Source: Setoptus koraiensis
Taxonomy: Eukaryota; Animalia; Arthropoda
Length of the DNA: 64,000 bases
Assembly (NCBI GenBank): GCA_048013815.1
Contig: CM106585.1
Location: 3,286,001-3,350,000 of the forward strand
Direction: 5' to 3'
Shown: one piece after another, positions 1 to 36,344 of the stretch
Layout: the number at the start of each line of letters is the position of its first letter
How positions within the stretch are numbered: the stretch's first letter is position 1
Position numbers and translations under genes: made by a program
Notes under the pieces: model-generated
What the model saw: the letters and a program-made list of their open reading frames with translations, nothing else
Databases searched by the model: none
Told to the model about the DNA's origin: nothing

Positions 1-1309
1 GATCAGTGGAATTGACCAACATCTCTACAGGTTTCTGACCTAATTCGTGCGCTTTATCTAGCACCTTACCGGTGAATGTTTCATCTTCTTTGGAGCGCTT
101 CTCATCCTCCCTAGATCGCGACTTGTTTTCTCTCAGTTTCTCGTCCTCTCGCAACATTTTATCACCGTCCCCTTTATCGTCGTTTCCTTTGAACATTGAC
201 TCTATCGGCCTAGCTACGGTATTGATTGCAGACTTTGTCATGTTGTGTATGGCATCGCCTGTCGATAAAATAGGATTCCTCTTGCCATCTTTATCAAGAC
301 CTAGTAGGTGATCAGTGGAATTGACCAACATCTCTACAGGCTTTTGGCCCACTTCGTGCATTTTATCCAAAACTTTACCAGTGAATGTTTCATCATCTCT
401 CTTCTCACTCTCAGCGCCTCCTTTTGGCCTCTTTTCGTCTTCTTCTTTCTTACTTCTGCTGTCACTTTTTAGATCATTATTCTTCACAGTTCTATCCGAA
501 TTTGCGGATACGCTCGAACCCGAACCACTTGAACCAGTAGAGTAAGAATGTGCTGAAGCGCTAGAACCTGAATTGCCTGAGCCAGTAGAGTAAGAATGTG
601 CTGAAGCGCTTGAACCCGAACCGCCTGAACCTGAACCGCTTGAACCCGAACCGCCTGAACCAGTAGAGTAAGAATGTGCTGAAGCGCTTGAACCTGAACC
701 GCCTGAACCGGTAGCGCTAGATTGTGCTGAAGCGCTTGATTTTATAGTGCTGGCACCACTAAAGTGGTCGGATTTTCTATCTTCACTTCTTTCATCTTTC
801 TTCGCCTCCTCTTTCTTCTTATATCCATCTTCTTTAGAAGATTCTTTCTGATGATCATGCGAATCTGAATCAAATCTCATTGTACTGTTTGCTAGATCTT
901 CGATTGGTTTTGCAATCATGTCTATTGGGGCCTTAATTGTCTCATGTATTGCATCGGCAGTCTTCAGTATTGGATCGTTCTTCTTATCGCTATTAAACAA
1001 CTTATGCCCGGGTTCTAATATTTTTTCCAAAGGAACCTTGCCAATGTCATGTATTTTATCGAACACTCTGGCCGTTTGAGATTCATTGTTTCGCCTTTCA
1101 ATGGCATCGCCTTTGATAAGTGATTCCAATGGCCTCGCCATAGAGTCTATGGGCTTTTTGGCCATATCGTGCAACTTTTGCTCGGTGGTTACAAGGGAAT
1201 GATTGGTATCTTTTTTATCGAGTCCAACCAAATGATCGACGCGCTCCAGCATTGCGTCTCTTGGCCTCTTGACATAGTCATGATACTCGTCGAACAATTT
1301 TGCAGTTTC
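1..1309 (-). repeat. Four copies of a ~67-aa protein module in the giant ORF
   Basis: Copies at about 1309-1109, 1078-889, 390-184 and 81-<1, pattern K[VL]FD..H...K.P.E.....DHL.GLDK....P.L.T.D.IH...K.PI...ARP.E. Nucleotides 1-31 are identical to 310-340 (309-bp period). Confidence 0.8.
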
Positions 1310-4300
1310 TGTTTCGTTTTGCGTCTTTTCATGACCAATCTTCTTTTCTTGTTCATGTCCTTTTGGGAGCATCTCTTTAGTCTCTTTCAGTTTGTCCATC
1401 ATCTCTTCCTTCTTTTCATCAAATTTGTCATATTTTTGATGTTTATAACTGGTCTTGGAATCTGATTGACTTTCAATCTTCGCTGAAGCCACAGCCACAG
1501 TTGATCTGCTAGATGGCTCCTGAGTGGTCTTCGAAGAAGTGTCACTACTAGTGTCAATATTGCTCTTCATAGAGTTTTTTTCGGGATGCTGAGTAGTTGT
1601 AGACTCATCGCCCCGACTTGGCTGTCGAGTTGTACCAGTAGTAGCTTTATCAATAAATCTGCCTATCGGTTCAGTTATATTGCGCAATGCAGAAGACCTT
1701 GAATCAGACTCGCGAATTTCCCTTCTTGAACGGACGTTCGCCACCTGTAATGCGCTATTGGAGGTGATTGATCGCTTCCTTCTATCTTTGTGCAGTAATT
1801 TCTGCAATGGATCAGTCAATAGAGACAGAGGATTGTTGCCGTTGTCTTTCGAATGACTATTATCTTGTTTGTCTTTATTTTTGCTGATTTTCTCGATCGT
1901 GATGATAAGCTCTTGCTTCTTCTTTGTTCCTTTCTCCTCAGTCAAGCCCAATGGGCCGTCTTTATTGACCATCACGACGGGTTTTGGTCCAGGATTCAAC
2001 TTGTTGCGCTGCAGATCTTCAAGTTGCTTGCTCAGAGCATAGCTGCCTAATTGGTTTTCGAATTTGGGCATCTGTTGTGATTGAAGCTGTTGCTGTAAAA
2101 TTTGTTGTTGGAGCTGAACTTGTTTTAGTTGTAACTGCAATTGCTGTGTCGTTGGATCAATAGATTTGAGTTGCTGTAGTGGCTCCGGAGATACGTTTTT
2201 CGTTGGCACAACTTTCGCATTTGGAGCACTTCCGGTCAAACCAACACTGGCTGATAAAGATGGATTGAATTGAGGCGAAGCTGGCGTTTGTTGCTGTTGT
2301 GTCGGTTGCTGTTGCTGATTAGGAGCTTGCATTTGCTGCGGCTGATTTATGTTCCGCAACATTTTATTCGCGATCGACTCACTACCTGTTGATCCGAAAT
2401 TCACTGATGCTGAATCAGGGCCTGTTTGATGAGCCACTTGCATTTGGTGCTGATTCGTCGCTGAATTTGTTTGCGAAATTCCGTTGACTGAGACAGCCGT
2501 ATTTGAGCCTTTCGCTATTGCTGTTGCGGAACCGGAAGCTGCTGCGGCAGCGCCTGATTGCTGAGATGGCTGCAGTTGTTGTTGCTGCTGTTGTTGCATC
2601 GATTGGGAACCAGACGCCTGAACGGAGCTCCTTGGTGTTCCGGTTGGGCCAGATGATGATGGCGGTCTGTTTTGTTGCTGTTGATCTGCTACATTTGAGG
2701 AGCTTTGCTGATGAGAGGAAACTATATCGGATTTTGGGGGCTGATTGACTTCGGGCTGATTAGTTGCCAAGACACCGGTGATTGGCAACATTGTAGAAGA
2801 ATCTATTGAATTCTGAGACGACAGAGTGGTTGCCGATGGCGCTGATGGCGCACTCACGGAGCTCCTACTCGTACCGCTAGCTTCGAGATCGTGTTGCTGC
2901 GACATTGTGTTGAATATATTTTGACTTGCAATTGATTTGGGCAAATCATCTCGGATTTGGTTGAAAATTTCGTTGACTCGGTTGACTATGTTTGCGTTGG
3001 CTTGCGTCTGGTCTCCATTTGGACTACTCGAGGTAGCCACTTGAGCAGAAGCTGGCGACGGTGATGAGCTCGATGTAAGTTCCGGAGCGGCAGATCTAGA
3101 ACTTACAGAAAAATCGCCGTTCGTTGTTGCTGATGCCGTCTTAGATGACGATTGCTTGCCTTCGGACAGTTTATTATTGATCATATCTAATTTTCGTTTG
3201 ATAACATCCAAAGCTGGCTCAACTGATTGTTGGTTAGACGAGGACCCCACACTCATTGATTGTCGATTGTCTGAGTCAGCACTGACACTCGATTTGTTGG
3301 CACCTTGTTTCTCGTCACCTTCACCATTCATAGATGATTTCGAAGAGGACGAGCTAGACGAAGAACGATGATCATTGGAATTGTTGCTGTTCACCTCAAC
3401 TCCGTTTTTCCCACCATCGTCTGATTTTTTCTTCTTCTTTTTTGTCTTTTTTGATTGCTGCTCTTCGCTTTCCTCCTCTTCTGGATCTTTTCCACGATGT
3501 TTTTTATTGTATCGACGCTTGCCAATTGCTGATCTTTCCTCGTTGCTGTTATCTTCATTGTCAGAATCGTCTTCGTTCTCTTCATCGCTGTTGTTGTTGT
3601 TGCCATTCTCGACACCGTTTCTACTCGAATCTGTGTCTTGATTTTTATGATTTGATTTAGATTTTTTCTTTCCAGATTTCTTGCTATTTTGAGAGGCAGA
3701 GGCCTCTTGATGAGGATAGCCGCCTCCACCACCACCATCGTTACCGGAAACAGAAGAAGATCGAGCCGACGAGTCGGGTTGCTGCTTTTGCTGTTCGGAA
3801 ACCGCGGACTTGCTGGACCCGTTCTGGTCTTGTTGCTGCTGGTTTTGGATATTTCCACCACGACCGCTACCGCTTTTACCTAGCGAATCGACAGTGTTTT
3901 TCGCAGCACCTGTTATATCACTCAACGAATCCAAAGTTTTAGCACCGGCGCCCAACATTCCCGTCATTCCGCCCATGATGGTTGATATTGCCTGAAATGG
4001 ATTCACAACTATATTAGATAACGTGTCTATGGTGTCACGCTTATACCGACAACAATCTGACCTTTTTTCTGTCAAATTGCTATCATTGGTGTCACTAGTA
4101 ATAATAAGCTGTTGCAAAGTTAGTAATGCTGATGATAAGGACGACGGCGACGACAACGACGACAATGACGACACTGACAATGGTGATGATTTAGATGATG
4201 ATACAGTTGTTGATATTGATGCTGCTGTTAGTGATGGTTTAGACGAAGATGAAATCGGACGATATGATGAATAATGTCGGAAAACACTACGTTTGTGGGA

Positions 4301-6376
4301 GTTTATACTACTATCGTGTTTAGCATGATGCGACTGTTGATCAGGTTTTCGCTTCTTCTGCTGGTGATGGTGAAATAACCCATCATTGTGGCCACTTGCA
4401 AGTGGATTCATTTTTGAGGACGATTCGCCATCTTCTACAGCGAATGACATCAACGTTATTGTGGCACTCAATTTGGCAGTTTTGTTGTCGTCACCATCAT
4501 CATTATCGCCAAAATCGTCTTTCTGACTCCTATCAGCATCTAAAGCAATAGCATCAATATTTGTGTCTCTATGATCCATCGAGCTCAGAGGACGAAAGCC
4601 ATTTTGCTTATTTAGATTAAACAAGTGAGTATCATCAGCATTATCAAAGCCGTAGTCGCCATTGTTGTTGTTGCTGTCATGGTCGTCATGCTTAGAAACA
4701 GAAATTTGCGGCAATGAGCCTATTGAACCTACTATTTTAACGGGTTTGGATTTGTACAATCCGACACTTTCTGGAGAAAAATTCATTTTCTTAATAGATG
4801 AGGTCCTCTTATTTTTAAACGGTCGTCTGCTGCTGAATAAATTAGGTTTATCATCAGAGAAAAGATGTCTCAGGCACGTGAGCGCCAACGATCTCTCCGA
4901 AGAATACGTTTTGGAATATCGGCTTTTTGCTATCAAATTTAGATGATATTCGAGCCATTCGTTGCTACTACTGGGACCGTTCTTGTTTGCATAAAACATT
5001 TTTCTATTATCACCCCTCTTGCCTGTCAAATCGACCAGTTTTCTACACAAAATTTTTATCTCTTCTTTCGCTTGTTCACCCTTGATTTTTTTGTAACTTT
5101 GCTTCTTCGCGAAATTCCTCGTCTCGGGCAACAAAAAACTGTGATAGTCTCCTCTCTGAGAACTAAGTGTGTTCGTTGTTAAGCTTATAAGCTGAGATTG
5201 AATCGGCTCGATGAGCTTACCGCCGAACATCATAATCCTAGAGTGTCCATCATCAGTCTTTTTGCCATCACCAATATAGTTATCAATATCAAAAACATAA
5301 CCTCTATCATCATTATCATCCATAGAATTGTCTGATATAAAACTGTAACTAAATTTAGATGGCATTTCCAATGTGTCATCGCGTCGTCGTTGCTGCTGCT
5401 GTCTGATAAGATTGCTGTTACTCGCACTTACAGGTAAATTCAATTTTTGTCCATCGCCTACAATCTGTTGCGTCTGAGCGGTTTTCTTAATTGGGTCCGC
5501 AACAGTAACAAAAACTTGCACATTTGCATGACCAATCTGCTTTTTCAATCGTTCCTCGGCATCCTTTAGACCTTGAGTCTGTTCTGCGTTGACTTGTTGC
5601 TTATCACCACCAGTGGCGGTTGTCGACAACTTACCGTCAACAGAAGGAGGCAAACTCGATGAAGATTCGCCAAAAGAACTTTTAGCTGATGCCGAGACGC
5701 CATTGACGCTGCTAGATACCTGTTGCTGGGGTTGTAATAGTGATTGTTGTGATCCTTGTTGAAGCTGCAACCCATTATTGTTGGATGATTGACCCTGTAA
5801 TTCAGCGCCACTTTGCGGAACATTGTTGACATTGTTTGTGACGGCATTGTTGCTAACGTTGCTCTGTCCACTGATTGGATAATAATTTGATTTACTGTCG
5901 TTTTTATCTTTATTGGCACTTGTCTCGGGCGCCGTTGTTGTGGTGCTTGGCTTGTTACCACCATCAAAAATATTGTCTATAGCTTTGATGAATGGATTTT
6001 TGTTTTCGCCTCCCTTGTCGGATTCTTTATTTTTATTGTCTTTGTTGCCAAATCCAAATAAATTGCCAAGATCAAATGAACGCTTGAATCTAGCATTAAT
6101 CGATATCTTTTCACTTAAACTAGAATCTTGCAACTGCTCTTGATCGCATTGAGCATAATTTACTAATGTACACAGCCATAAACTAGCTAGTAGAGCTAAC
6201 CCTATCGAGGTTGCTTGTAAATTCTTCTTACGATGGACAAAACTTATATTAGTAACCTCTTTTGAGAATAATTTGTTGCACAATGTTTTATTCTTGACGA
6301 AACCCATTGAGTGATGCTCAGGTTCACGGGCCTCACTTTCACTTCCGCCATCGCTAAAGTTACTGATAGTGAACAT
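1..6376 (-). CDS. Giant single-exon ORF (at least 2125 aa, 3' end outside the window); putative secreted, repeat-rich precursor protein
   Basis: ATG at 6376 after in-frame TAA/TGA. Manual translation MFTISNFSDGG...STD finds no stop to position 1, and the ORF track lists no minus-strand ORF in this frame, as expected if there is no stop. Hydrophobic SIGLALLASLWLCTLVNYAQC near the N-terminus; RFKR, RYKR, RRKR and RSRR sites; Q/S/N-rich segments and internal repeats. Confidence 0.85.
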   Translation of the reverse strand, partial: MFTISNFSDGGSESEAREPEHHSMGFVKNKTLCNKLFSKEVTNISFVHRKKNLQATSIGLALLASLWLCTLVNYAQCDQEQLQDSSLSEKISINARFKRSFDLGNLFGFGNKDNKNKESDKGGENKNPFIKAIDNIFDGGNKPSTTTTAPETSANKDKNDSKSNYYPISGQSNVSNNAVTNNVNNVPQSGAELQGQSSNNNGLQLQQGSQQSLLQPQQQVSSSVNGVSASAKSSFGESSSSLPPSVDGKLSTTATGGDKQQVNAEQTQGLKDAEERLKKQIGHANVQVFVTVADPIKKTAQTQQIVGDGQKLNLPVSASNSNLIRQQQQRRRDDTLEMPSKFSYSFISDNSMDDNDDRGYVFDIDNYIGDGKKTDDGHSRIMMFGGKLIEPIQSQLISLTTNTLSSQRGDYHSFLLPETRNFAKKQSYKKIKGEQAKEEIKILCRKLVDLTGKRGDNRKMFYANKNGPSSSNEWLEYHLNLIAKSRYSKTYSSERSLALTCLRHLFSDDKPNLFSSRRPFKNKRTSSIKKMNFSPESVGLYKSKPVKIVGSIGSLPQISVSKHDDHDSNNNNGDYGFDNADDTHLFNLNKQNGFRPLSSMDHRDTNIDAIALDADRSQKDDFGDNDDGDDNKTAKLSATITLMSFAVEDGESSSKMNPLASGHNDGLFHHHQQKKRKPDQQSHHAKHDSSINSHKRSVFRHYSSYRPISSSSKPSLTAASISTTVSSSKSSPLSVSSLSSLSSPSSLSSALLTLQQLIITSDTNDSNLTEKRSDCCRYKRDTIDTLSNIVVNPFQAISTIMGGMTGMLGAGAKTLDSLSDITGAAKNTVDSLGKSGSGRGGNIQNQQQQDQNGSSKSAVSEQQKQQPDSSARSSSVSGNDGGGGGGYPHQEASASQNSKKSGKKKSKSNHKNQDTDSSRNGVENGNNNNSDEENEDDSDNEDNSNEERSAIGKRRYNKKHRGKDPEEEESEEQQSKKTKKKKKKSDDGGKNGVEVNSNNSNDHRSSSSSSSSKSSMNGEGDEKQGANKSSVSADSDNRQSMSVGSSSNQQSVEPALDVIKRKLDMINNKLSEGKQSSSKTASATTNGDFSVSSRSAAPELTSSSSPSPASAQVATSSSPNGDQTQANANIVNRVNEIFNQIRDDLPKSIASQNIFNTMSQQHDLEASGTSRSSVSAPSAPSATTLSSQNSIDSSTMLPITGVLATNQPEVNQPPKSDIVSSHQQSSSNVADQQQQNRPPSSSGPTGTPRSSVQASGSQSMQQQQQQQLQPSQQSGAAAAASGSATAIAKGSNTAVSVNGISQTNSATNQHQMQVAHQTGPDSASVNFGSTGSESIANKMLRNINQPQQMQAPNQQQQPTQQQQTPASPQFNPSLSASVGLTGSAPNAKVVPTKNVSPEPLQQLKSIDPTTQQLQLQLKQVQLQQQILQQQLQSQQMPKFENQLGSYALSKQLEDLQRNKLNPGPKPVVMVNKDGPLGLTEEKGTKKKQELIITIEKISKNKDKQDNSHSKDNGNNPLSLLTDPLQKLLHKDRRKRSITSNSALQVANVRSRREIRESDSRSSALRNITEPIGRFIDKATTGTTRQPSRGDESTTTQHPEKNSMKSNIDTSSDTSSKTTQEPSSRSTVAVASAKIESQSDSKTSYKHQKYDKFDEKKEEMMDKLKETKEMLPKGHEQEKKIGHEKTQNETETAKLFDEYHDYVKRPRDAMLERVDHLVGLDKKDTNHSLVTTEQKLHDMAKKPIDSMARPLESLIKGDAIERRNNESQTARVFDKIHDIGKVPLEKILEPGHKLFNSDKKNDPILKTADAIHETIKAPIDMIAKPIEDLANSTMRFDSDSHDHQKESSKEDGYKKKEEAKKDERSEDRKSDHFSGASTIKSSASAQSSATGSGGSGSSASAHSYSTGSGGSGSSGSGSGGSGSSASAHSYSTGSGNSGSSASAHSYSTGSSGSGSSVSANSDRTVKNNDLKSDSRSKKEEDEKRPKGGAESEKRDDETFTGKVLDKMHEVGQKPVEMLVNSTDHLLGLDKDGKRNPILSTGDAIHNMTKSAINTVARPIESMFKGNDDKGDGDKMLREDEKLRENKSRSREDEKRSKEDETFTGKVLDKAHELGQKPVEMLVNSTD
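517..750 (-). repeat. Gly/Ser-rich tandem coding repeat (GSGGSGSSASAHSYST)
   Basis: The 25-mer tagagtaagaatgtgctgaagcgct occurs at 538, 586 and 664, with a variant near 713. It is interspersed with gaacc(c/t)gaaccgc units. Confidence 0.9.
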
Positions 6377-8293
6377 GATCACAATGCTAGATCATTATAG
6401 ATTTGCAAATTACTTTTTTCTGGCTAGTTTTCGGTGAAATTTGTACAAATTTTCGGTTGGTGCATGAAATTTTTCGTTGTTTGTATAGAGCTTTTGGACG
6501 CAGCAATCGCAGCATTAACAACCATCTGCAACTGGGCTAATTTATAGGTAGATTCCTAGCTCTTTCTACACTCTATCAATAATAGTGCTCTCAACTGTAG
6601 CAATTCGTTAAAAAAATAGTGTGAGCACTTGGTTGTACCTTTCACATTTAGTTAGATTACTGTAGATGTCCATGCTCAATGCTGCGAAGAAATTAATCAA
6701 TGATACAAAAAATACCAACGAAAGTACTTCATTTTTGCTTTCATCGATTTCAAACTTCCCACTGAGATGTATCAAATTTCTCGATTAACTAGGAATTGAA
6801 TGAAGTTATCCACTTCAATCTTGTTCAATCTTGTAGGCTCAATGTATATTCAAAGCTTGTATATCACGAAACAAGGTTCGGATATGCGAGTGACGTACTT
6901 TTCTGCCACCATCCACAGATCAAAACTACACAGATAAGTAATTATCGCTCGGATAGCTGAGCAGTCTGCTTAGCGATCATTTGAACTGTTGAAATGGGCT
7001 CCTGGCAGAAAACTTATTCACCTTAACAAGTAGTCTTTAGCGAAGTTATGGTGCACGAATTCGCTCCAAATCGGACAAATCGTGAATCTGTACTGATATC
7101 CTATGAAGAACTCGTTGCCTAATACATATTCTATTTGCCACAGAGAATACGACTTAAGTCCTCCTTCTGTTTAACATTTTGTTTCTGTTAGACATCACTT
7201 GGTATGTCGTAGATGGTTTAGTTGTTCTCAGTTGACTGCAGACTCTTTTTGAGAGTACTTTCATTGCATACTATAAATGAAGATGCATCTTCAATTAGGA
7301 AAATTCAATGTGAAAAACTAGCACTTGATTATTTTGATTCTTCTCTCTTCGATGATGCAATGTTCGAAAGTTTTTCGTGAGCAAAAACACTCACACCATC
7401 GATAATTGAACGAGAACCCAATTTATATTGACGGACGCAGAGCTGATGACTTATAACGGATAGTTTTCATCGCTATTTTCTAACGGTTGCTTTGCAGTTT
7501 CACTAAATCTATACATGGATTAATCTCCTCTAGAACTGAACTTGATCAAGCATTTATGTATAAGCGTATTCAATTACTAATCTAAGCTAGAAACAACTCT
7601 GTTCGGACAAACAAGGAGAATAAAACTGACTGGGTGATGGTGGATATGTTCAGATTTTGCCAGATCTGGAATAATGAATAGTCTTATAGAATCTGAATGT
7701 GCTCAATTTATTTACCATCATTAACTTTATGCTGAGCTAAAAATGTTGGTGGAGCCTCAAGGAAACACAGTTAAATGTTTGCAATTTCACGACGGGAGAA
7801 GAGTCACCACCGCATTAGAGTCATTGATAGATGAATGGAGAGTCATACGAACGAGTTCGAAAAAGTCCAAGTGTCGGTGATTGCGAAACGTCAGAGACAA
7901 AATTGGATTTAGAAAGAGATACCTATGTACTATGCGCATACATACGACTGCGCACACTAGAATTCGAAATGGTGTTCAAGCGAAAGAAGGATCCTACCCT
8001 ATTTGGCTTGATTTCCGGAAATTGGAGGAAATTTTATTGATAAATATCACACACTTACTGCATCCCACTGTGTTAAACCTTTGACAACCTTTGCGAGACC
8101 AACTCCCATCAGCACCGCCGATTATGATCCACGAAAACGTGATCCTTATGAGCAGAGGCAACGAAATCAGTTTAAAATTGATCAAGAACGAGTGGAGATT
8201 AGTGTACCAGCCAAAATGGTTTATACTCGTGGTTTAAACCATAAGGACTTTCTGCCACTTTCTACCAATACTGGTAGAAACGGTATAAAGGGT

Positions 8294-8838: not shown

Positions 8839-9026
8839 TTCTGGTTCTCAATATTTTCGACAATTATGCAAGTAATTGATGTATCTGTTTCTTTAAGAAT
8901 GTTATAGAGCTCAGAAAGCAAGAGTAACGCGTGCGTTACCTGATTTTCCACGTGCTTTATGATCAGGACCCGCGAAGAACAAAAGAAGAAGACGCACTAT
9001 GTTAGGGCCTTTGTATTGAAATAGAC

Positions 9027-9286
9027 TGTTGAGATGGCTTCATATTTTGAGTATTCTTTTATTTATATGAAAACTGAAGCTTGATTATAATGTCTTGGTG
9101 GTATTTATATGAAATTCTTGGATAAAAATAATTTGTATAACAACTGTCTTGGCTATTAATAGTTTGGCTAAATATAGAAGTGTAAATTGGGTCAGTGTTG
9201 ATAATTGGATGTCACGGTGAACTTCCTGTGCTGACCCTTGTAAAGCGCCACGATGAGGCGACTGATGGAGACATGATAGTCCAACA
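9027..9286 (-). mobile_element. 3' LTR (260 bp) of a minus-strand LTR retrotransposon
   Basis: TGTTG...CAACA termini, internal TATAAATA and AATAAA. Immediately preceded on the minus strand by the polypurine tract GAAGGGGAG (9295-9287), with no PBS after it. Confidence 0.75.
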
Positions 9287-9332
9287 CTCCCCTTCATGAC
9301 GTAATTCTGTGGCGTTCATCGATGTAGATACA

Positions 9333-9811
9333 TTAGTGTCTTTTTGTATGAAACATTGAGTAGATGGTTTCATCCTCGAGTTGTTTGTTCTCAAATAGGG
9401 TTTCATCCATCGTCATGCAGTGGGCAATTCTCGAAGTAAAATTGGCTTGAGTTGCTCCTGTCGTTAATAAGTCGCGATAAATATTTTTGTGTGCTAATTT
9501 GCCATGACAATGGCAGTTAAATGCAAGTTTGGTTAGGATGCATCCAGATGCGATGAGTTGGGCGTAGTGAGGCCTTGACCAGTCGTCATGATGTGATTCA
9601 TAGCAGAGGTAGTGTGAAGCTGTTTCAAATAAATCCAACTGTCTTGCATACTGGGCTGATTTATCCTCCGCCGGACAGTCCGAGTTTGGATAGTTGTGGA
9701 CTTGCCTTAGCTTGTTTTCCTTGACTATTGGGACGGTCTCGTCGGAAGAATCACAAGGACAGTCGATTTTCGTCCTTGCCAATGCGCACGAGAGAGTTAC
9801 AGCGTAGTGTC
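9333..9811 (-). CDS. 5'-truncated Cys/His-rich orphan ORF upstream of the polypurine tract
   Basis: About 159 open codons ending in TAA at 9333. The ORF-track start (9854) lies inside the neighbouring copia LTR, so the real 5' part was cut off by that insertion. No RT, RNase H or integrase motifs. Confidence 0.4.
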
Positions 9812-10050
9812 TGTTGGTTATAATGGTGTGTGCAGCATTGCGCTGTGCATGCATTGGCAGTCTCGACTATGGCGCCAACGATCACGCTCGATACACAACT
9901 TGCAGTTGCATCCAATAGAAGCAATGCAAGAGGTTCAACCGTTTTTCTTGTGTGAGCCAATTGATAATAATTTCAATCAGTATGAGATTGTACACCAAAA
10001 GAGATACACAAATAAATAAGCTTTACATATATAAAACTATAACTCTAACA
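9812..10050 (+). repeat. 5' LTR of the copia element (239 bp)
   Basis: Starts TGTTGGTTATA, ends TATAACTCTAACA, AATAAA near 10012, directly followed by the PBS. Confidence 0.75.
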
Positions 10051-10064
10051 GGTTATGGGCCCAG
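10051..10064 (+). promoter_or_regulatory. Primer-binding site GGTTATGGGCCCAG (internal/half tRNA-iMet type)
   Basis: Directly abuts the LTR-terminal CA and matches the PBS known from Drosophila copia. Confidence 0.85.
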
Positions 10065-10158
10065 AGCACAATTAATTAATTGACTGACTAATCGCAGACA
10101 ATTATAATTGAACAATAGAAATATATAAGAATCGAAAGTCTTATATATTAAATTGAAA

Positions 10159-12821
10159 ATGGATAAAGATATACCAACAATAAGAAAATTCGGAGGCGAA
10201 GACTTTAGAACATGGAAATATCTCGTTGAGATAATTCTTGAATCGAAGAAATTTTTGGATTGCATAAGAACAGAGATGATTAAACCCGAACCTCCTACAA
10301 ATGAATACGATCAATGGTTAGCTAAGGATACCAGAGCAAGAGCTTTCATAGCTACCTCTCTTGAACCCAATATAATTGAGCATATATACAATTGTAAATC
10401 TGCAAAGGCAGTCTGGGACAGACTGTTGACGATATATGAACAGAGTTCATCTATCAACAGACATGTGCTAGAGGCACAACTTCACAATTATCGAATGGAT
10501 CCGAATGATTCGATCTCCACTCATGTAAGCAAGGTGGAAATGATAGCGAGATCTCTGAAAGACGCTGGTGAAACGAAGAGTGATCAGTCGATTGCATCGA
10601 AGATCATTTTGACTCTTTCTGATGACTACAAACATGTTATATCATCGTGGAATAACTTACCTCAAGATCAGCAGACTACTGCTAATTTACTGCCTAGACT
10701 ACTCGTAGAAGAGTCTCTGAATAAGCAAAGAAAAGACGATGTACAATCAGCAAATGAACAAGCTTTGTCAGCTTCATCATCACGTAACAAATTTACAAAC
10801 AAGACAAGACACAGCGGCTCGAATGGCAAAGATAAAGAGAAAGCCATTGCAGACAAGAAAAAGAACACCCAATGTGGATACTGTAAGGTCAAAGGACACT
10901 GGTGGCGTGAATGTCACAAACGGATGAGAGAAAGAGGCCCCTCAGATGATAACAATAGAGGTGGGCGAAACAACAATGTTGCATTCAGTGCTGAATTGAA
11001 TTGTGCATCGAAAGAAAACAAATCCGAAATCTGGCTAGGCGATTCTGGAGCGTCACAACATATGACCTTCAACAGAAACTGGTTCACGTCGTTCAAGCGA
11101 ATTGATGAGAAATATCCAATCACCATTGGTAACGGCAAAGTACTGTACGCTAAAGGAAGAGGAGATATCCTAATTAAAGCAGCCACAAGTGATCAAGAAT
11201 GGATCAATGGATCGATAAAAGATGTTCTATATGTACCAGAGTTAGAGAAAAATCTCTTTTCCATTGGATCTGCTGCAGACAAAGGATTCACAATAATTTA
11301 CACAGCAGACAGGTGTCTAATTAAGAATGATAGCACAACTGTAGCGATTGGCGACAGACGACAAATAAGTTATATACGATGATGTTTAAAGTTACGTCAC
11401 CAATGAAAGCCAACCCTGCATCGAATGAATCAATCCCACTTTCAATTTGGCATTAGAGGCTTGCTCATGTGAGCACGAACACCATCAAAGATATGTTTAC
11501 CAAGCAAACCGTCGATGGCTTACAATTATCAGATCAAGAAAATGTGTTTTGCGGAAGTTGTGCTGAAGGAAAGCAGCACAAATTATCATTTCAGTCGTCT
11601 CAATCAGTGAAGGCAGAGAAGAGTGGTATCTATATACATAGTGACGTGTGTGGACCGATGTCTGTTCAGTCACCTAGCGGTAGTCGATACTACATCAATT
11701 TCAAAGACGAATTTAGCGGTTATCGACAGGTGTATTTCATGAGAAAGAAGAGTGAGGCTCTTGATAAATTCAAGCAGTTCGAGATTCAGGTATTCAACGA
11801 CACCGGAAACCGCATCCAGCACCTGCTAACTGACAATGGAACTGAGTATGTAAATAAAGACTTCAAGGAATACTTATTACGTAAGAGGATCCAGCATCAC
11901 ACAACAGCTCCATACACGCCACAACAGAATGGAGTTGCTGAGCGTGATAACAGAACAATTGTCGAAGCTGCAAGATCTATGTTATTGCATAGCAAGCTAC
12001 CCAAGTTCCTTTGGGCGGAAGCCGTAAACACAGCTGGATATACACTCAATAGAGTTACGTGCAAGAGAACAGCCAACTCAACTCCTTATGAGAAATGGTT
12101 TGGGACTAAACCATTCATCGGTCATCTGAGAACATTCGGTTGTGAGGCCTATGTTCACATCGAGAAACAGTTCAGAGACAAGTTCGACAGTAAATCGAAG
12201 AGAATGGTGTTCGTTGGCTATACAGAGAAGAGCAACACTTACAGATTCTGGAACGACAACGATAGAAGAGTTACCATCAGCAGAGAAGTGTTGTTCAATG
12301 AGTCCAACACACATTCGAAAGATTATGCAATTAAGAACAAGAATGGTATCGCTATAGAAATTGAAGAAGAATCAGATACAGTAATAGAGGATACAGTCGA
12401 TGATACAATAGAAGACACACCAGATGATCAACATAATCGTGATGTATCAACCGATTACTTTGATGCCATTGATGACCATGCTAACACTGATGCACCTGTA
12501 GCCGAACAGACTAATGAACAACAACAGAGAAGCGAGACACAAAAACGATGGAATAAGTCGTACAGAACTCCATTAGCAAGAGATGCTTATCCATTGAGAA
12601 GTAGATCAAACGATGACGCAACTAGCAGTCACCGTGATGAGTCAGCCATGGTTGCTTATGACAATGAACCTGTCACTTTGAAAGACGCTATAGATGATGC
12701 TAATTATCCTCAGTGGAAGTCTGCGATGGACGAAGAGTTCGATTCGTTGATGTCCAATAAGACTTGGACATTGAAGCCACTACCGGAAGGGCGAAAAGCT
12801 ATCAAGAATAAATATTATTAA
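10159..12821 (+). pseudogene. Disrupted copia gag-pol
   Basis: First ATG at 10159. Frameshift near 11360 (gag-PR frame ends IR*, the other frame reads NKLYTMMFKV), in-frame TAG in IWH*RLAH just before 11469, truncation at 12821. Confidence 0.9.
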
Positions 12822-22359: not shown

Positions 22360-25149
22360 CTATTCGAGATCCACAGCGAGTGCATGATGCTGCTGCTGAT
22401 GTGAAAAAAGCGGATTGTGCCTAAAGTAATCTGGATTTATCAGAGTCGAGTGACGCGGACTGACGTGATAAACAATGGGACTCTGTTTAATTGTTTGCCT
22501 TGCCTCCAGAGCCAATTGTTGTTTGCCCGACCTATGTCGTTGTCTACTGGTCGCCGGACTGCTCAACTCTTGCTGCTTGCGCTGCTGTGGTTGCAACGTT
22601 AATGGGGCCGATTTGCGTGGCCCGAATGCCGACTGTGAAGGAAGAGTCTTGGTAGCTTGGCCTGATGCTGCGTTTAATTGCATTGATTTTGATGTCTTTA
22701 ATTTCAGTTTTGGCTTATTATCCGGTGCGTTCGCCTGGAGAAGCATGAAGGGTCCGTTAATGTGATGTTCCTGTTGCAATTGCTGTAATGATGGCGGTGC
22801 TTGTTGTTGCTGCTGCTGTTGATGATAAAAGCCATTTGAGTTAGTGAATTCATTCATTACGGGATTATATGCTGCATTTGTTTGCTGCAACTGCTGGTGA
22901 GGCGATGATTCAACCAATTGAGCTGCCACCTCGGCCACTGCTTGCGCCTCTATCTGTTGCTGGCGATGATTTAAATGTTGATTTAAATTAACAGGATAAA
23001 CGGGATATGATGCGAATTGTTCAGGCGAACCGGAAGTGGCATCCAATGAGTAATAGTGTGCTTGGAATGGACTGGTGCGGTGCAATGCGTTGTTATTGGC
23101 GTATTGAGAAAACAGTTTCTGTATCGGATGCTGTTGTGACAAGCTCGCTGGTTGCTGTTGGAAAGATGGTTCGCCCAAATATTGGCCTGGCTCTTGTTGT
23201 CTGGCCTGCGTTGGGAACGTCTCGTAAGTTGCATATTGTTTGTTGTTGTAACTGTGCTGCTGCTGCTGTTGCGTTGGATTGGGCCCCTGGACGTTGCTTA
23301 ATCTGGGGTAATATCTTAGAGTTTGTGGTGGCTGTTGTTGTGATGGTGGCAAGAAGTGATTGCTTGAGTCGAGTGTCGCCGAATACAATTGATTGTTGTT
23401 GGCTGTTGTAGCCGGCTGGTAGTTGGCCGAAAGTAATCGCTGTATTGAGTCATAATTGAATAATAACGGTATAAATGGGGGCCCATTCAAGGGTATATTG
23501 TGCGCTGATGGCTGAGCTTGACCGTACGTTGATGCAGCAACCTGGTTAGTTCGGGTTTGCAACACTCCATTCTGATCTTGTGTCGTTGTTGTGTTAGTTG
23601 TTGTTTGGTTTTGTTTGCCCAAATCTTCAACTAAATCAATTTTCACCGGCCCATATGGTTGTCTGGTGTAGTGGACAAGTTTGTAACGTTGGTCGTAACT
23701 TACATAAGTGAAACGACCCTTAATTGTTCCATTTTTAAATGTGGTCTCCTCTCTGAACACTTTTTGCAGTTCCTCTTTGTTGTTGGTGGGAAAAAAGTTG
23801 CACTTGTTGCTGTCGTCGTTTCTGTCAATATCTTTGTCTTTGTTATTGGGTTGCAGTGTTGTCGTCGTTTGATTATTATTTGTTAATTCATTTGTTGTTG
23901 TAGTGGTTGTCTTATTGCTATCTATTGTTGTTTCATTTTTGGGTTGTTGCGTTACCATGTTGCTTGATACTATTAATGCGTTGTCCACCGCTGGCTTGAC
24001 AACTGTTGTCACTTTCTCCACTAGCATAGTGGCCACGGTGGTGCTATTTAATAGCGGTGCAACAGTTGTTGGCAGCTCCGATGCTGTCGTTGTTTGCATT
24101 GTTGTCGTTGTGGTTGTTGTTGTCATGGGTGGTGGTGGAGGTGTTACAGTTTGTGTGGTTGTAGTGATTGTCGTTGTTGCTGCCAGTGTTGTTGGTGCCG
24201 GAGTTGTGCTTGTTGTGATTGTCACGGGTGGTGGCATTGTTGTTGGTGGTGCTGGAGTAGTAGTTGTAGTTGTTGTTGTTGGCGCTTCGGTTGATGCCAG
24301 GGTGGTTGCAGCCTCAGTTGTTGTCGTAGTTGTTGCCTCAGTTGTTGTTGTGGTGGTTGCCGCCAAGGTAGTTGGCGGTGCTAGAGTAGTGGGTGCCGAG
24401 CTTGTTGTTGTTGGTGCTAGTGTGGTGGTTGTTGTTGTGGTTGGCGCCAATGAGCTCATCGACAGCTCAGTTGTTGTCGGTTGTTGGATATCTGACGCAG
24501 CTTGTGTCGAGCTCAATGATGACAGCGAATCTGGTCCATCTGTCGACGACAATGTACTAGTTGTTGCCGCTTGGTCCATTAAGGCGCTAGTAATTAGTGA
24601 TTCTGTGGACAGGCCGGCGCTGCTCTCCGCTGTTGTCAATACCGGCGGTTCCTTCAATGGATTATCTTTTTGCATGTCTTGGGGCCTGTCTTGCATATGA
24701 TCTAAGAAGGTTGAGGGCGTTGTGGACTGCTCATTCTGCTGTTGTTGTTGCTGCTGCTGCTGTTGTTGTTGTTGTTGCTGCTGTTGTTGTTGCTGTTGTT
24801 GCAAGTTTTGACCCATTGATGGCATTCCAAAGATGGGAGTCACAGGCTCATAGGGACTCTTCGCCACCTCAAGAGCATCGGTCAATTTCGGCACATCCTC
24901 CGCGGGTATCACCTCACGTGTATTTTTGGGTTGTTTTTGGCCGGTGGGCGCTGCATCATTTCCTCTTGTCGCAACGTCAATTAGGATAATCGCCAAGACA
25001 ACGATGACGTGGGTGTAGGTGGCAAACTGCTCATTGTCGACAAACGCACACACACACAAGAATTTCGCTTTATATTGGGTATAAAAATTGGGAAAATATC
25101 GCTAGAGAATTTAGGCTCGATTGGGTGACTCACTTACCTTGGATTTCAT
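22360..25149 (-). CDS. Secreted mucin-like/cuticular protein with Thr/Pro tract, polyQ and a Rebers-Riddiford-like segment; join(22360..25026,25138..25149), 892 aa
   Basis: 12-nt first exon ATGAAATCCAAG|GTAAGT splices in frame to CAG|TTTGCC, giving the signal-like MKSKFATYTHVIVVLAIILIDVATRG. EETTFKNGTIKGRFTYVSYDQRYKLVHYT (about 23641-23755) resembles G...G.Y.Y...DG....V.Y. Confidence 0.7.
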
Positions 25150-29631: not shown

Positions 29632-32600
29632 TCAACTTGTATCAAAAGGTCTGTTCATTAGACCACTATTATGACCGATTATGCCCTTCGATATTGGCTG
29701 TATTATGGTCTTGTGTGTATGAATAGATTTTAAATTATTGCTACCATTTGTTGTGGTTGATGTAGCCATTGTCGAGTTTGTCGATTGTATTGATGCTGTG
29801 GTTGTTGCGCCGTGCAAAACGCACGTCTGGCGCGGCTGCGTGGGCGGCTTATAATGATCTCTAAAATTATTATTATTATTATTACTATTGCTATTACCGT
29901 TATTATTGTTATTATTATTACTAATGTTATTGTTAACGTTACTATTGTTATTGTTGCTATTATTACTAATTTTATTGATAGAGTTGATGCTGTTTCTATT
30001 TTGGCTACTTCCGTTGACACCATTCAATTTTGGACTGCCCGGCAGAGATTTTATAGATATTAGATTCTTTGCTTGACCTAAATTAGATTGAGCTATTGTC
30101 TGTGATTGGTGATTGAGGGGCGCAAATGTTGACACCGATGCACTTGATTGGCTTGTTTTCAACGATGTGTTAACACCGTTAGCGGGATTAGACAATATTT
30201 GCTCGTCCGATCGACGCAGCGCCGACAACGGCCTGAAGCAACTTCTCACATTGGCATTGGCATCGGTTGCTGTGGTTGTTGTCGGCGACAACATATTTGA
30301 CGTGCGCGTAAAATTTGCTCCAGATATCGACGGTCTAGACAGATTGAGTCTGGGCCTTTTGGTGAGTCTTCCAGCGCGACTGCCGGTTTTTCTCAGGAAT
30401 CTGTGTATGAGGAAACCTGTATGGAAATCAATTGAATTGGCACACAAATTAGATAATAGATTAGATCACGATCAAACAACAACGATTATATTGATTGTTA
30501 CCAGCGCTTGCAAATTAGCTAATTGTGCCAATTAAATCAACTAATTAGTTACTCTGGTTACAGTTAGTATTAACACGTTATCTCACCTGTGAGCGTCAGA
30601 AATGACAAAAACGAGAATAAAGTTATTAGGAATATACTGAATCCGCTCAGTCCATTTGACTCGGTGTCCTCTATGTCCAGCGACGACACAATTTTGTTGT
30701 TGTTGTTGGCGAATTGTTGCTTTGGTTTGTTGGTTGCATTGGTGTCGTTATTGTTGTTGTTGTTGTTGTTGCTGTTGTAGCCGGGATATTTGTCTAAATT
30801 GAAGCCATTCTTAATTGCACTATCGGCGTTATTCTTACTGGAATTGGTCACTTGATTAACTGCTTGCGCCGCTGATGAGTCGTGATTGCCGGGTTGCAGC
30901 TTGTTAGTTGGCGCCTGTTTCACCTGTCTTGCCTGATTTGCGTTAATTAATTTTCCATGGGCCAGCGCAACATTAGTATGCTCATCAATGTTCGTGCCGC
31001 CACCGCCGCCGGCAGTGGGAGCAACAATGATATTATGCAAATGATCTGCATTTGTCATGCCAAACGGCACTTGATTGGCGTTGCTGTTGACACCGCCGTA
31101 GTGTGGATGGCGTTTTGGTTGCTGAGCGCGAGCTCGCATGCCATCCGACAGTGTTGTTGGCATATTGTTGCTATTGAACGGTATGGCTGTGGTAGTGGCA
31201 ACATCAAACGGGTGACTGTAGTGATGATGCTGGTTGTTGTTGTTGTTGTGATCGGTATCAGTGTTTGCGTTGTTCATGTAATTAAATATGACCCCACTGT
31301 TGGCTGGGCCCATGTTGAGTCCGTTGGCCAGCGTGGACTGGCCATTGAGGACCTGGCCCGTGGGCAAGTGTGACATTTGGCGCTTGTGTTGCTGATTCAA
31401 ATTGTTTATTTGTCTCAGCAAACTGTAGTTGTGAATGAAGCGCTGATTGTGATGATGTTGCATGGGCGACATCATGGATGGCATATTCATGTATGACAAC
31501 TGGCTACCCGGATCGCCAAACAAATGATGATGGGCCGTGTGCCTAACCGGATTGTTGGTGTTGCCCAGTGGCATGTCGCCCATTTCCTCGAAGGCCTGAC
31601 TGGTCTGTTGTTTGAGTCGCGATTGGTCGGCCTCGTTGCTGCCGTAGGTAGTAGTGCTGGATTGCGCCGGTGAGCTCTGATTTTGGCCATTCATCATCAT
31701 CTGATTGGCCTGTTGCTGCTGATTGGTGAGATCTGGGTTTGAGTTGGCGTTGGCGTTCACATTCACGTTCGAATTGGCAGCGCCCTGCTGCTGCTTGTCG
31801 CCGCCAGGTGAGCTGCTCGACTGCTGATTCGACGGGCCCGTCGCGGCACCAGCGGGCGCTGCAGTGGCCAAAAAAACGCCACCCTGATCTTGCTGATCCA
31901 GCGCCGGATGATGCAAGGACGGTGTCGACTGTTGAGGGGCCAACTGATTGGCGTTGTTGTTGTTGTTGTTGCTGCTGCTGGTTGCTTGCGCTTGATTTGA
32001 TTCACTGTTGAACTTCAGTCCGTACAATTGCTGCTCGCCGGCGCCCTCCTTGCCCGGGCCTCCGATGAAATTCAACTGGGACCCGACAACAATGTCGCTG
32101 TCATTTGCGCTGTTGCCGGCGTGTTGCAGGCCAGCGGGGCCGAGGCTGGCCCCGTTCGCGGCCAGCACGCCAACAGTCGACTGGGCGACATCGTTCGGCT
32201 GAGCGGCGGCGGCAGCGGCTTGCTGCTGATTGGCCTTGCCGGCCAGCATCAGTAGGGCGGCGTGATTCTCGGAATTGCTGAGAGCCTGATTGAATTTTTG
32301 CTGCAACTCGGCCAGTTTTTGCTGTTGCTCCTGAATCAATCGCTGACTTATCAATCGTTTGGCCAGCTCGGTGAAATTGAACTGTCTCATGTCCAATCCG
32401 GGTGGCTGCTGTGGAAGCTGCATGCTGCTCACACTCGGCGAGTATGGCGGCGACAGTGGTGACATAATATTGTTGTTTACATGATGATGGCTGACATTGT
32501 TCGGCCCGCCGGCGCCCTGTGCGTCCATTAAATTTAGCAGGGGGCGCTGTTGTTCAATCAAATTTTGATGGCTTGTCAACAATATTGGAGCGAATTGTTG

Positions 32601-35600
32601 TTGTTGTTGTTGGCGCTGTTGTTGTTGCTGTTGCTCACTTATATCGCTGCTGCTGGCCTGATAATTGATTAGATCGAGCAACTGCTGCTGCTGTTGTTGA
32701 CGAAATGCATCGTCTTGGTGCATGCCGTTGCTCATCAAGCTGGGATTGAGTGCAACGGGCATGGCCATTCGAACGGGCTGCGATGGGGCCAACACTTGAT
32801 GATGTTGTTGTTGTTGCTGCTGCATTGTTTGTGGCCGATTCGCTTGCTTGCTCATCGACAGAGACTGTGGCAATTTGATGCTGTTGCCGCTTGTTGTTAT
32901 CATGACATTGGGCCGGATCATCTCACTGTGATTGGTCAGCATCATTTGTTTGTTTGTTCTCGGTGGATAATAATTGACCAACTGGCCGTTTTGCGGCTGC
33001 GACTGATAGTTAACTTTGGCCGTCTGATCACTGTTGGGCGCTGCCGTGCTCTCCTCGTCGCCAGCGTCACTCACCTGTATCACCGATATTGGACTTTGGT
33101 TGCCCTGGCCGGGAGCTATTGTCTCTTGGCGTTGTTGATTTGGCCCGCCAAAAATAATATGCTGAGCTGGCTCATTATTTGATTGACTTTCCGCTGTCGG
33201 TTGTTGCTGATGCTCCTCCATAGATTGCTGCTGCTGCTGCTGATGATGATGATGATGAACAGAATCGTTGGATGGCCGGCCCATTTGTTGTTGGTGATGC
33301 TGCTGCTGTTGCTGATGATGCTGTTGCTGTTGCATTGCGTCATCGTCGGCACTTCCGTTTCCGCCTGACTGGGCCATCTCGTCAGAATTGTACTGATCTG
33401 AATTGGAAAATTGCTGCTGCTGATGTTGTTGTTGTTGCTGATGTTGTTGTTGCTGCTGTTGTTGTTGCTGTTGTTGTTGTTGCTGCTGCTGGGCATCATC
33501 GTCTCGCGAGCCTGTCGCTTCGCCAACATTCTCCTCAACAGGCGGCTCCTGATGTTGCTGCTGACCATCGTCCATTTGATTTGAATTTGCCGTATTGGGA
33601 TCGCCAGAGTTGTCTTGTTCCATTGTTTGTTGACCAGCGGCCTCGTCGCCCGTTTGTTTGTCGTTGCCGTCAGAATGTTGCTGTTGTTGTTGCTGCTGCT
33701 GCAAGAAACGTGTCTGGTTGTAGGCGTTGTATCGCGATGACTGATTGTGATAGGGCTCCGCACCAGACGAGTGAAAATGATGATATGACGCCGATTGATT
33801 TGGCGCCCTCGCCGGATCCCGCTTTCTTTGTTGCGCCAGAGAGCTGGGATGTGGCTCAAAATGATGTATGTGATGTATGGAGGTTGTTGTTTGCGTTGTT
33901 TGTGTTGGTGGCACGGGTACGGGCACCGGTACAGGCACGGTGGCCGGAACAATGGGCAAGGTAGTGAGTGCGGGCAATGTGGATAATTGAGCAGAGCCTC
34001 CATATGGAGCGACATTTCTCGTGGCTTGTTGCACAACATCGAATTGTTTCAATTGCGACAACAGAGCATTGTTGTTGTTGTTGCTGTTTGGATTGGTTTC
34101 CAATGGATCTAAGCCAATGATCTCAACAGGAACAATAGTGCTACTGCTACCCAAACCACCAGCTATTGTTGAGGGCAAATTATTGTTGGGACGATCATGA
34201 CTGTGATGGTGATTATTGTGGTGATAATCGTTGTTGTTGTCGTCATGCTCATTAATTATTGTCGCTGTCTGTCTGAAGGGCACCTTGACCACTTCATCGT
34301 CGTCGTCATCGCCACCAGTGGCGGCAATAATTGGCTTTGAATGGTCCCCATCGATGGGGCTCCGAAAGCGTTGCTGTTGCTGACGATATCGTTGTTGTTG
34401 TCGGTGCTGGTGCTGCTGATGATGATGATGGTGATACGGTTGCTGGCGATGATGATGGTCATTGTCGTATTGATGATGATGGTGATGTTTGTCCGGGTGG
34501 GCGACACTATGATGATGCTGTTGTGAATCACGAATATCATGATCGTGATGATTGTCATAATTGCCTTGGTCGTGATCATCGTGGTTGTGATGATGATGGT
34601 GATACTGATCATTGTTGTTGCTGTTGACACTATTTCCTTGAAATGGATGAACAATATTGCTCGACGTGTAACTGTCACTACCAAAACCACCGACAGGATT
34701 ATGATAATCGTTCAGTTGTTGGTTGTTATTGTAGAAACTCTTTTTGCTCTTTAACCTATTAGCACTATTTAGATATTTTTGCTTTACGTAAGAATGCATT
34801 TGATAGGCGGCATTGGAGCCGCTTGACAACAACGATGGCAAACTAATTGGCTTTGATTGTGATGACGTTTGTTTATTGCTATGCGGTGACACTAAATAGT
34901 CGTTTTGCGAATCGGCATCACTGTCATAGGGCCAAACAATGACCGGTCTGTTGCGATCTTCGGCCGTCTGAGTTGTGTCCAAATCGTTTGATTTATTTGG
35001 TGAGCTGCCCATTGTTTCCGTTGTGTGATTTAAATTAGAATGGCCACTAAATATGGCCTCTTTGTTGTTGTTGTTGTTGTTAGTGGATAGTGTTGTTGAA
35101 TTAATCATAACCAATTGATTGTTCTTTTGATCTCTCTCAATCGACTGCTGCAACGTCGCTGACTGAGCCCTCACTTGATGGCTAGGACTAGTGTTGATGG
35201 GGCTGGCGGCGGCGGCGGCGGCAGTGCTAATGGTGGGCGCCTCTAAACACATAACTACATTTACTATGCGATTGACGTTGTTATTATTATATCTCATATG
35301 CTGATCGTTATCATCGGAATTTTTTGTTTTAGTTGTGTCGCCGTTTGCATCATTATTGCCACTGTTTGATGCGGACGATGAACCGGAGGATGACGATGAT
35401 TTTCTATGATGCAACGACGAAATATTGTTGTCATCTGTCATGTTTGGATTGTCACCATTGTCATGGTTGTCTCTTTGTTGTTTTCTTCTTCTATTCAAAT
35501 CAAAATGAGTTGTGGAAGACAGTAGTATTAGTGTCAAAATCAACACAATTAAACTATTTGATATGGATATGTGTATCGATGAGGATCTAATTTGATTTGA

Positions 35601-36344
35601 GTGCCCACCATAATGTGTCTTGCTAGCCTGTATCATGATTGTTGTCTCTTTGTTTATTGTAGTAGTTGTTGTGGTGGTTGAGTTGTTCTCTGTTCTAGCT
35701 TTTAGCCTCCGTCTATAACCATTAACATTCTCAGTGATAAACAACGACTTGTTTGTCTCATGAGCGCTTTTGGGTAGTAGTTGCTGTTGTTGTTGGCATT
35801 TGCTATGGCTTATTGGTATGGTATCTCGCAATTTATTGTTTGCTGAGATCCTTTTGTTATTATCATTCCTTTGGCACTGATTGGCGTGAATTGTGGTCCT
35901 CGTTGTTGTAGTTGTTGTTGTGTGATTTACTAATTGTCGTTGTTGATTAACAACATGGCCATGCGTAGCATGATCATGATCGTCATGATCATAATGATGC
36001 TCGCAATTATTAGGATGATTGGTACACTTGTAATGGTGATGAAAATGATGATGATGATAGTGATGATGCTGCCGCTGCTGCTGCTGTTGTTGTTGTTGGT
36101 TCTTTTGTTGACAAACAAGCCGACAACAACAATCATTGAGGACACAACAATCGTTGGCGGTGCTCATTAGCATCAATTTTTGTTGATTTGCTGTTGTTCT
36201 ATTGGTTAAATTTTGATTCAACTTCAATTTGTTATTATTACGCAATACCAATAATGATTTCTTTTTGCACTTTCCGTCATCGCTATTGCTGCTACCATTG
36301 TTGTTGTGAATATTGCTTTTACAGAGATGCTGCAATTCGTTCAT
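29632..36344 (-). CDS. Very large N/Q/H-rich low-complexity membrane protein; join(29632..30416,30587..36344), about 2180 aa
   Basis: 5.76-kb open exon. ACAG|GTGAG donor at 30586 and CATACAG|G acceptor at 30417 join in frame and complete a TM helix FSIFLITLFSFLSFLTLTGFLIH followed by basic RFLRK. A second hydrophobic stretch SLIVLILTLILLSS lies near residue 270. Confidence 0.65.

Follow-up and report, generated by a model that had tools for sequence, protein, structure and literature searches.

A giant, apparently intronless gene of Setoptus koraiensis and its probable product, a secreted multi-block protein with helical-hairpin modules of an undescribed family

The stretch of DNA analysed here, hereafter called the window, comprises 64,000 nucleotides of the Setoptus koraiensis genome (GenBank assembly GCA_048013815.1, contig CM106585.1, positions 3,286,001 to 3,350,000; G000:C1:3286001-3350000 in our numbering). 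On the minus strand at its beginning, we found a giant open reading frame (ORF) of 2,751 codons, whose product carries six copies of a helical-hairpin module shared with a small family of proteins that has no named member. We conclude that this frame is a real, selected coding sequence. The reading that we favour, and which we consider probable by a modest measure, is that it encodes a secreted, mostly disordered, multi-block extracellular protein, a divergent and enlarged member of the family that is likely to self-associate into a material.

The reading frame and gene model

The frame had been predicted to be open from the ATG at position 6376 to the window edge, over at least 2125 codons. 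Translation bore this out: the minus-strand frame (window:2-6376:-) contains 2,125 codons without a stop, and stops counted over the giant ORF in the other two frames of the same strand number 124 and 301. When the adjacent DNA was examined for the end of the frame, as had been suggested, we found that the frame continues for another ~1.9 kb before the window, to a TGA ending at G000:C1:3284121 (window position -1879), which gives the total of 2,751 codons. On L010, a stretch that includes the DNA before the window, the whole ORF occupies L010:624-8876:-, with its stop at L010 621-623; codons 1-2125 of the 2751 lie within the window (1..6376, minus strand), and the rest precede it. When the codons ahead of the ATG are included, the frame comprises 2,756 open codons. 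The base composition of the ORF predicts ~170 stops by chance, of which none was seen. The giant ORF is present in a single copy in the genome, no paralogues of its modules or of its N-terminal region were found elsewhere in the same genome, and it apparently constitutes one intact, intronless gene. Its absence from the ORF track, also remarked on beforehand, is real and has a trivial cause, since that list leaves out ORFs that run off the window.

The first in-frame ATG (6374..6376, minus strand) lies five codons past an upstream stop, and the second corresponds to residue 24 (6305-6307, minus strand), with no further methionine ahead of the hydrophobic segment that is discussed below. The 54 codons preceding that segment are all open (P about 0.03 by chance), and an unspliced start is therefore mildly favoured over a hidden 5' exon. 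Two weak signals were noted by eye on the minus strand: a TATAAA (6541..6546), a possible promoter element ~165 nt upstream of the ATG, and an AATAAA 98 nt past the stop, before the window (L010 518-523). Two tiny upstream ORFs would fall within the leader of the gene. No part of the locus looks human.

Helical-hairpin modules of an undescribed protein family

Between residues 1690 and 2392, the giant protein contains six modules of ~70 residues. M1 (residues 1690-1757; 1106..1309), M2 (residues 1766-1832; 881..1081) and M3 (residues 1994-2066; 179..397), the first of three young copies, lie within the window. M4 (residues 2097-2169) has its start at 1..88 of the window and lies as a whole at L010 2370-2588, while M5 (L010 1977-2195) and M6 (L010 1701-1925) precede the window; all are on the minus strand. 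Each module consists of two halves of ~30 residues, each of which opens with a hydrophobic-Asp-x-x-His turn and continues with one or two heptads of the form Lys/Arg-Pro-hydrophobic-Asp/Glu-x-hydrophobic-hydrophobic. The corresponding motif, P-[IVFL]-[DEQ]-x-[ILMFA], occurs 18 times, versus 0.7 expected from shuffles. The ~28-residue helices are amphipathic, with a hydrophobic moment of 0.43-0.50 (z 3.4-4.1 versus shuffles) that peaks at 98-100 degrees, and the consensus hydrophobic positions of the family are spaced 3-4-3-4 as judged by eye.

Repeated helical modules had been proposed from the sequence, and these six copies substantiate the proposal: AlphaFold2, given a family alignment (A2), predicts helix-loop-helix modules at a pLDDT (predicted local distance difference test) of 70-80, separated by disordered linkers. 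For residues 1960-2420 this model has a mean pLDDT of 60.6 and a predicted template modelling score (pTM) of 0.28; the model made without an alignment was uninformative (pLDDT 44). A Foldseek search of the PDB with the family-alignment model gave no match, and a full VIA-align pass returned generic helical hairpins only, with Z no greater than 6.7, which is background for helical models.

Three of the modules, with starts at residues 1996, 2099 and 2230, arose by recent duplication and are ~90% identical in their DNA. When the 68-residue cores of the older copy and each of the younger ones were compared, synonymous divergence (dS) was 0.25-0.33 and nonsynonymous divergence (dN) 0.02-0.045, with dN/dS ratios of 0.09 and 0.14; the youngest pair gave a ratio of 0.71, from only 7 differences. 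The dN/dS values of the cores indicate that the modules have been kept as protein by purifying selection since their duplication.

To find relatives, residues 1660-2420 were searched exhaustively with phmmer against 1.84 billion representative sequences. This search yielded 13 matches, 12 of which are true relatives (E 5e-49 to 2e-14, 29-36% identity); the remaining one, P0013, was rejected as a spurious repeat-protein match. A profile word search with an alignment of the relatives (A1) added 11 more, and the family thus stands at 23 sequences (P0001-P0012, P0014-P0024), all of them from raw-read (Logan) assemblies or from one JGI metagenome. All of these relatives are without a name and without NCBI or UniRef records, and Pfam assigns no domain to any of them. 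The members are 600-1,200 residues long and 40-66% identical among themselves. They share a common order: a signal peptide is followed by Gly/Ser/Ala-rich stretches and short amphipathic motifs led by Thr-Pro-Lys, then by four distinct conserved helical-hairpin modules (I-IV), two shorter C-terminal motifs and a Q/S-rich tail. In P0007, residues ~330-620 consist of about 12 tandem, ~20-residue, Lys/Gly/Glu/Val amphipathic units placed ahead of the modules, and N-terminal expansion by repeats thus occurs elsewhere in the family too.

Searches for known domains were uniformly negative. As had been anticipated when no known domain was recognised, Pfam found nothing above threshold on the ORF or its pieces, and on 24 aligned members it gave sub-threshold scatter only, with DUF7792 in 7 and YtxH in 5. 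Sequence searches of the PDB with the giant protein and with the family profile returned nothing; a match on the Gly/Ser stretch at E 0.9 was discarded as chance. The ESM Atlas gave no usable match for the module region or the N-terminal region, and a word search among long proteins only, for which the module region served as query, found nothing. Across the Pfam, PDB and phmmer searches there was no full-length match to a known intracellular family, which the original prediction had named as one of the outcomes that would count against it.

Two family members could be placed in their genomic context. The copy on JGI contig Ga0058701_10000220 (L017:9236-12802, plus strand) is a single 1,188-codon ORF with a Gly/Ser/Ala-rich part of ~330 residues, and its neighbours are intronless animal genes for a short-chain dehydrogenase and a mitochondrial carrier. 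The other, on ENA UOVY01000105, labelled as plant metagenome, lies at L018:9019-12013 (plus strand) among intronless animal genes for SMAD, HORMA/MAD2 and ACAD9. In this second gene, the signal peptide and the Gly/Ala/Ser start (9019-9381) stand 67 nt ahead of the main ORF (9449-12013), a gap that could be a short intron or a frameshift. The neighbours of both copies are 51-76% identical to the versions in the S. koraiensis genome, which indicates that the relatives come from compact animal genomes that bear a moderate relationship to the present one. There is no microsynteny with the two loci, as their neighbours map to another contig or lie more than 1 Mb away. The MAD2/HORMA match in this genome (G000:C2:7914973-7915662, minus strand) contains two in-frame stops (one TGA, one TAA), likely due to an intron.

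Only residues ~1,720-2,400 of the giant protein match the family, and within them residues 1978-2385 align collinearly with residues 413-799 of P0014 (E 4e-56). The Gly/Ser/Ala-rich low complexity that flanks the modules is represented by a repeat at residues 1880-1956. Searched against the genome, the family profile matches this ORF alone, six times, so that the family has no second member there. Family module II is the best-scoring counterpart of five of the modules, and module IV, by a small margin over module I, that of M2; no module of type III is present. A search of the unique parts recovered neither of the C-terminal motifs (V and VI) nor the Thr-Pro-Lys motif of the N-terminus. The missing module type and motifs point to a divergent, rebuilt member rather than a plain orthologue, and as read from these sequences the array is one regrown by duplication of a single module type.

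Giant protein and relatives have in common the hairpin modules with their paired Pro-hydrophobic-acidic heptads and the conserved His and Asp that open each helix; they also share Gly/Ser-rich stretches, a single hydrophobic segment on the N-terminal side, an almost complete lack of cysteine, and a gene that is intronless or may contain a single short intron. They differ in that the giant protein is 2.3-4.6 times longer, with ~1,700 unique residues ahead of the shared part and ~350 behind it, has six modules (three of them recent duplicates) and four furin-type sites, and carries its signal-like segment away from the extreme N-terminus. The first ~1,700 and last ~350 residues have no relatives within the family or at the two genomic loci, the N-terminal region has none in the ESM Atlas or in this genome, and the unique N-terminal residues 280-830 found no match in a word-indexed protein database. 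The claim that the protein is lineage-specific thus stood, with the refinement that the protein is no orphan: the C-terminal third places it in a small unnamed family.

These comparisons bear on the possibility that the frame is a non-working one, decaying or transposon-derived and held open by biased composition. Transposon relics do surround it, with copia-like ORFs at 10153-12821, and much of the protein is of low complexity. However, none of the ~170 expected stops is present and the frame is single copy; among its low-complexity parts, a single 229-bp Gly/Ser repeat is the only DNA tandem repeat; dN/dS in the module cores is about 0.1; and other genomes have conserved homologues. We regard a dead frame as extremely improbable.

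Secretion, composition and furin-type sites

The original prediction placed a hydrophobic, signal-like segment at about residues 55-75. Hydrophobicity analysis locates it at residues 55-77 (6146..6214, minus strand), with the appearance of a signal peptide or signal anchor, and its core, residues 55-73, is the sole strongly hydrophobic stretch in the giant protein, as that prediction requires. Basic residues precede the segment, and small residues follow it at -3 and -1. In 15 of the 25 family sequences, which are seemingly all of the N-terminally complete ones, we found a single N-terminal, signal-peptide-like hydrophobic stretch and no other. The earlier description of the protein as of secreted type gains support from the relatives, in which this N-terminal stretch is followed by Gly/Ser/Ala-rich sequence. 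We consider it very likely that the giant protein enters the secretory pathway, a reading that depends on the hydrophobic segment 55 residues in and on the signal peptides of the relatives. Because the segment begins 55 residues from the first ATG, secretion is inferred here and not demonstrated.

If the segment were instead a type II signal anchor, or irrelevant to targeting, the protein would be membrane-anchored or intracellular, and its charged and Q-rich parts would have an intracellular role, for instance a nuclear one. The position of a ~20-residue hydrophobic stretch 55 residues from the start is compatible with this, the Lys-rich runs resemble nuclear localisation signals, and Q-rich intracellular proteins are frequent in this genome, to judge from neighbouring genes. 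The relatives, however, carry classic signal peptides at the very start and have no second hydrophobic segment, and in the giant protein there are small residues at -3 and -1 past the hydrophobic core, with a furin-type site shortly after. We judge a membrane-anchored or intracellular protein to be quite unlikely, and secretion remains the preferred reading.

The composition of the giant protein is dominated by polar and charged residues (Ser 14.8%, Lys 10.5%, Asp 8.2%, Asn 6.7%, Gln 5.9%), with Gly at 6.5%, Ala at 5.9%, and only 7 Cys and 2 Trp; it contains 29 N-glycosylation sequons and long Ser/Thr runs. The unique N-terminal body, for which no relatives were found, spans residues 100-1531 (1784..6079, minus strand). 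Within it, low-complexity sequence that is Q/N/S-rich, Ser/Thr-rich and K/E/D-rich flanks less biased sequence at residues ~330-830, and a K/E/D-rich block lies near residues 900-1000. Between modules M2 and M3 there is a Gly/Ser/Ala/His repeat of 16-residue units (residues 1880-1956; 511..739, minus strand), a DNA tandem repeat of 229 bp and the only one in the gene; its ~77 of 2,751 residues amount to ~3% of the protein. A charged tail (residues 2397-2751, minus strand, before the window) closes the sequence. No internal similarity was detected in the giant protein outside the modules at E<1e-4. The predicted mosaic of Q/S/N-rich linkers, a K/E-rich block and Gly/Ser repeats is thus present in full in the composition and repeat analysis.

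Four furin-type motifs, R-x-K/R-R, occur in the protein, versus 0.6 expected from whole-sequence shuffles (P 0.003) and 0.9 from block-wise shuffles (P 0.011). Site 1 (residues 96-99; 6080..6091) lies 22 residues past the putative signal cleavage site, site 2 is at residues 777-780 (4037..4048), and sites 3 and 4 are paired at residues 1532-1535 and 1549-1552 (1721..1783), all on the minus strand. The unique N-terminal part contains all four; among 22 relatives, 21 are free of such sites. The paired sites 3 and 4 mark the border between the unique N-terminal body and the family-like C-terminal part, and a cut there would free a piece of ~1,200 residues, the size of the largest relatives.

The same sites allow a different reading, in which the protein is a polyprotein precursor cut into separate products, perhaps active short amphipathic peptides. 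The excess of the motif over expectation and its absence from the relatives fit this idea, as do the propeptide-like spacing of site 1 behind the putative signal cleavage and the placement of sites 3 and 4, 17 residues apart, exactly at the border between unique and family-like sequence. The pieces would, however, be very large (about 680, 755 and 1,200 residues), unlike those of neuropeptide or antimicrobial-peptide precursors, and the segments that follow the sites share no detectable mutual similarity (E<1e-4, outside the modules). A polyprotein is in our estimation unlikely.

A candidate extracellular material, its counterparts and its surroundings

Our preferred reading, a secreted and self-associating multi-block protein, suggests the following course. 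The segment at residues 55-77 would carry the protein into the secretory pathway, where furin-type convertases could then cut at the four R-x-K/R-R sites, the paired site at 1532-1552 freeing the family-like piece of ~1,200 residues from the Q/N/S-rich front half. The amphipathic hairpins might self-associate into higher-order bundles, tethered by hydrated, probably glycosylated, low-complexity spacers. The outcome would be a gel, a glue or a fibre-like extracellular material, with saliva, spermatophore, egg cement and web as candidate settings. That the role is structural or adhesive we hold to be plausible, at slightly less than an even chance.

Several observations weigh against this reading. 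The signal-like segment stands 55 residues from the first ATG and 32 from the second, which is unusually far for a cleavable signal peptide; it may be a signal anchor, or there may be an unseen 5' exon. The K-rich and acidic blocks would suit a nuclear protein too. Homology to the family covers only about a quarter of the protein, with 22-31% identity to the relatives over the family alignment, and the protein lacks module III, both C-terminal motifs and the Thr-Pro-Lys motif of the N-terminus. The AlphaFold2 model has a pTM of only 0.28 and no specific fold match, and both furin cutting and self-association of the modules are steps that we infer. Other intronless low-complexity ORFs in the window reach 800-1,900 codons; long low-complexity ORFs being common there, little can be made of size by itself.

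Arthropod silks, glues, cements and mucus-like proteins are secreted block proteins, and it is to these that we liken the giant gene. The silk fibroins of spider mites and insects are large, secreted and built of Gly/Ser/Ala-rich repeats. The giant gene resembles them as a large, single-exon gene of secreted type with such repeats, of which its relatives carry up to ~330 residues. It differs in that the repeats make up ~77 of 2,751 residues, and its conserved parts are amphipathic helices and not beta-forming. Fibroins consist mostly of short Gly/Ala/Ser-rich units, and the giant protein does not; neither phmmer nor the word searches found sequence similarity between it and any named protein. 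The suggestion of a silk in the strict sense is therefore not supported, since the Gly/Ser repeats are only ~3% of the protein.

The coiled-coil silks of aculeate insects offer an analogy: they too are secreted and combine heptad-like amphipathic helices with Ser/Ala/Gly-rich disordered flanks. They form one long coiled coil, whereas the giant protein has six hairpins of 2 x 28 residues with internal conserved prolines, and no homology to them was found. Apolipophorin-III and the LEA/YtxH-like proteins share with it tandem amphipathic helices punctuated by prolines, but differ in repeat length, and no structural match rose above generic hairpins. The Pfam scores for these families were far below threshold (ApoLp-III, E 0.21 in 1 of 24 members; YtxH, best E 0.048, in 5 of 24), and neither an apolipophorin-III profile nor its fold was recognised. 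With mucins and granin-type precursors the giant protein has in common long Ser/Thr/Pro-rich and acidic disorder, sequons, and dibasic or furin-type sites. Mucins, however, have Cys-rich end domains, and the giant protein, with its 7 Cys, has none; by Pfam it also contains no granin motifs.

Instead of forming a material, the protein could be an effector delivered with the saliva into plants, where it would alter the cells or the defences of the host. The secreted-type architecture, the lineage restriction and the fast divergence would all fit: the family core is ~30% identical, versus 51-76% for housekeeping neighbours, and one relative comes from the assembly labelled as plant metagenome. 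A study of an eriophyoid genome reported that more than half of the predicted secreted proteins have no orthologues outside the lineage (PMC7738191), a restriction that is consistent with an effector. On the other hand, its length of 2,751 residues, its repetitive blocks and its conserved helical modules are what one would sooner expect of a matrix or material protein, and the module cores are under purifying and not diversifying selection. We consider the effector reading unlikely, to the same degree as the polyprotein, and continue to prefer an extracellular material.

A bolder version of that preference, which we regard as doubtful, is that the protein represents a new class of biomaterial: a furin-processed giant in which a front part that is prion-like (Q/N-rich) and mucin-like is joined to an array of amphipathic helical hairpins punctuated by prolines. 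The hairpins would, on the same doubtful view, come from a family confined to gall mites and their kin and would self-assemble into a glue, a spermatophore, a web or a plant-facing secretion.

In kind, the finding is unsurprising, as lineage-specific, low-complexity secreted proteins are common in arthropods and are to be expected. What is new is a conserved family of secreted proteins that has no Pfam entry, solved structure or named member, and a proline-containing helical-hairpin repeat that makes a target for structural study. The copy in this genome has duplicated modules and gained a large unique region, which brings it to about three times the usual size. The secretions of gall mites and their relatives are barely characterised molecularly, and public protein databases contain little annotation of their genomes; our search of the literature found no eriophyoid secretion proteome. 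For proteomic work on mite saliva, spermatophores or egg cement, the giant protein is a concrete candidate.

Other long ORFs in the window deserve mention. The gene sits among mobile-element relics: 4 kb upstream of it, adjacent ORFs of 409 and 450 residues (10153-12821, plus strand) resemble the gag/protease and integrase parts of copia-type elements. On the minus strand, an 899-residue ORF (22360-25059) has an N-terminal hydrophobic stretch, a long polyglutamine tract and Thr/Pro-rich, mucin-like runs, and is a candidate for another secreted low-complexity protein. Also on the minus strand are an intronless ORF of 1,934 residues (30570-36374) that is extremely Q/N/H-rich, with one internal and one C-terminal hydrophobic stretch; a Q-rich ORF of 1,473 residues (38092-42513) with two long repeated Gln/Glu/Arg coiled stretches; and an ORF of 798 residues (48327-50723) with a C-terminal hydrophobic tail.

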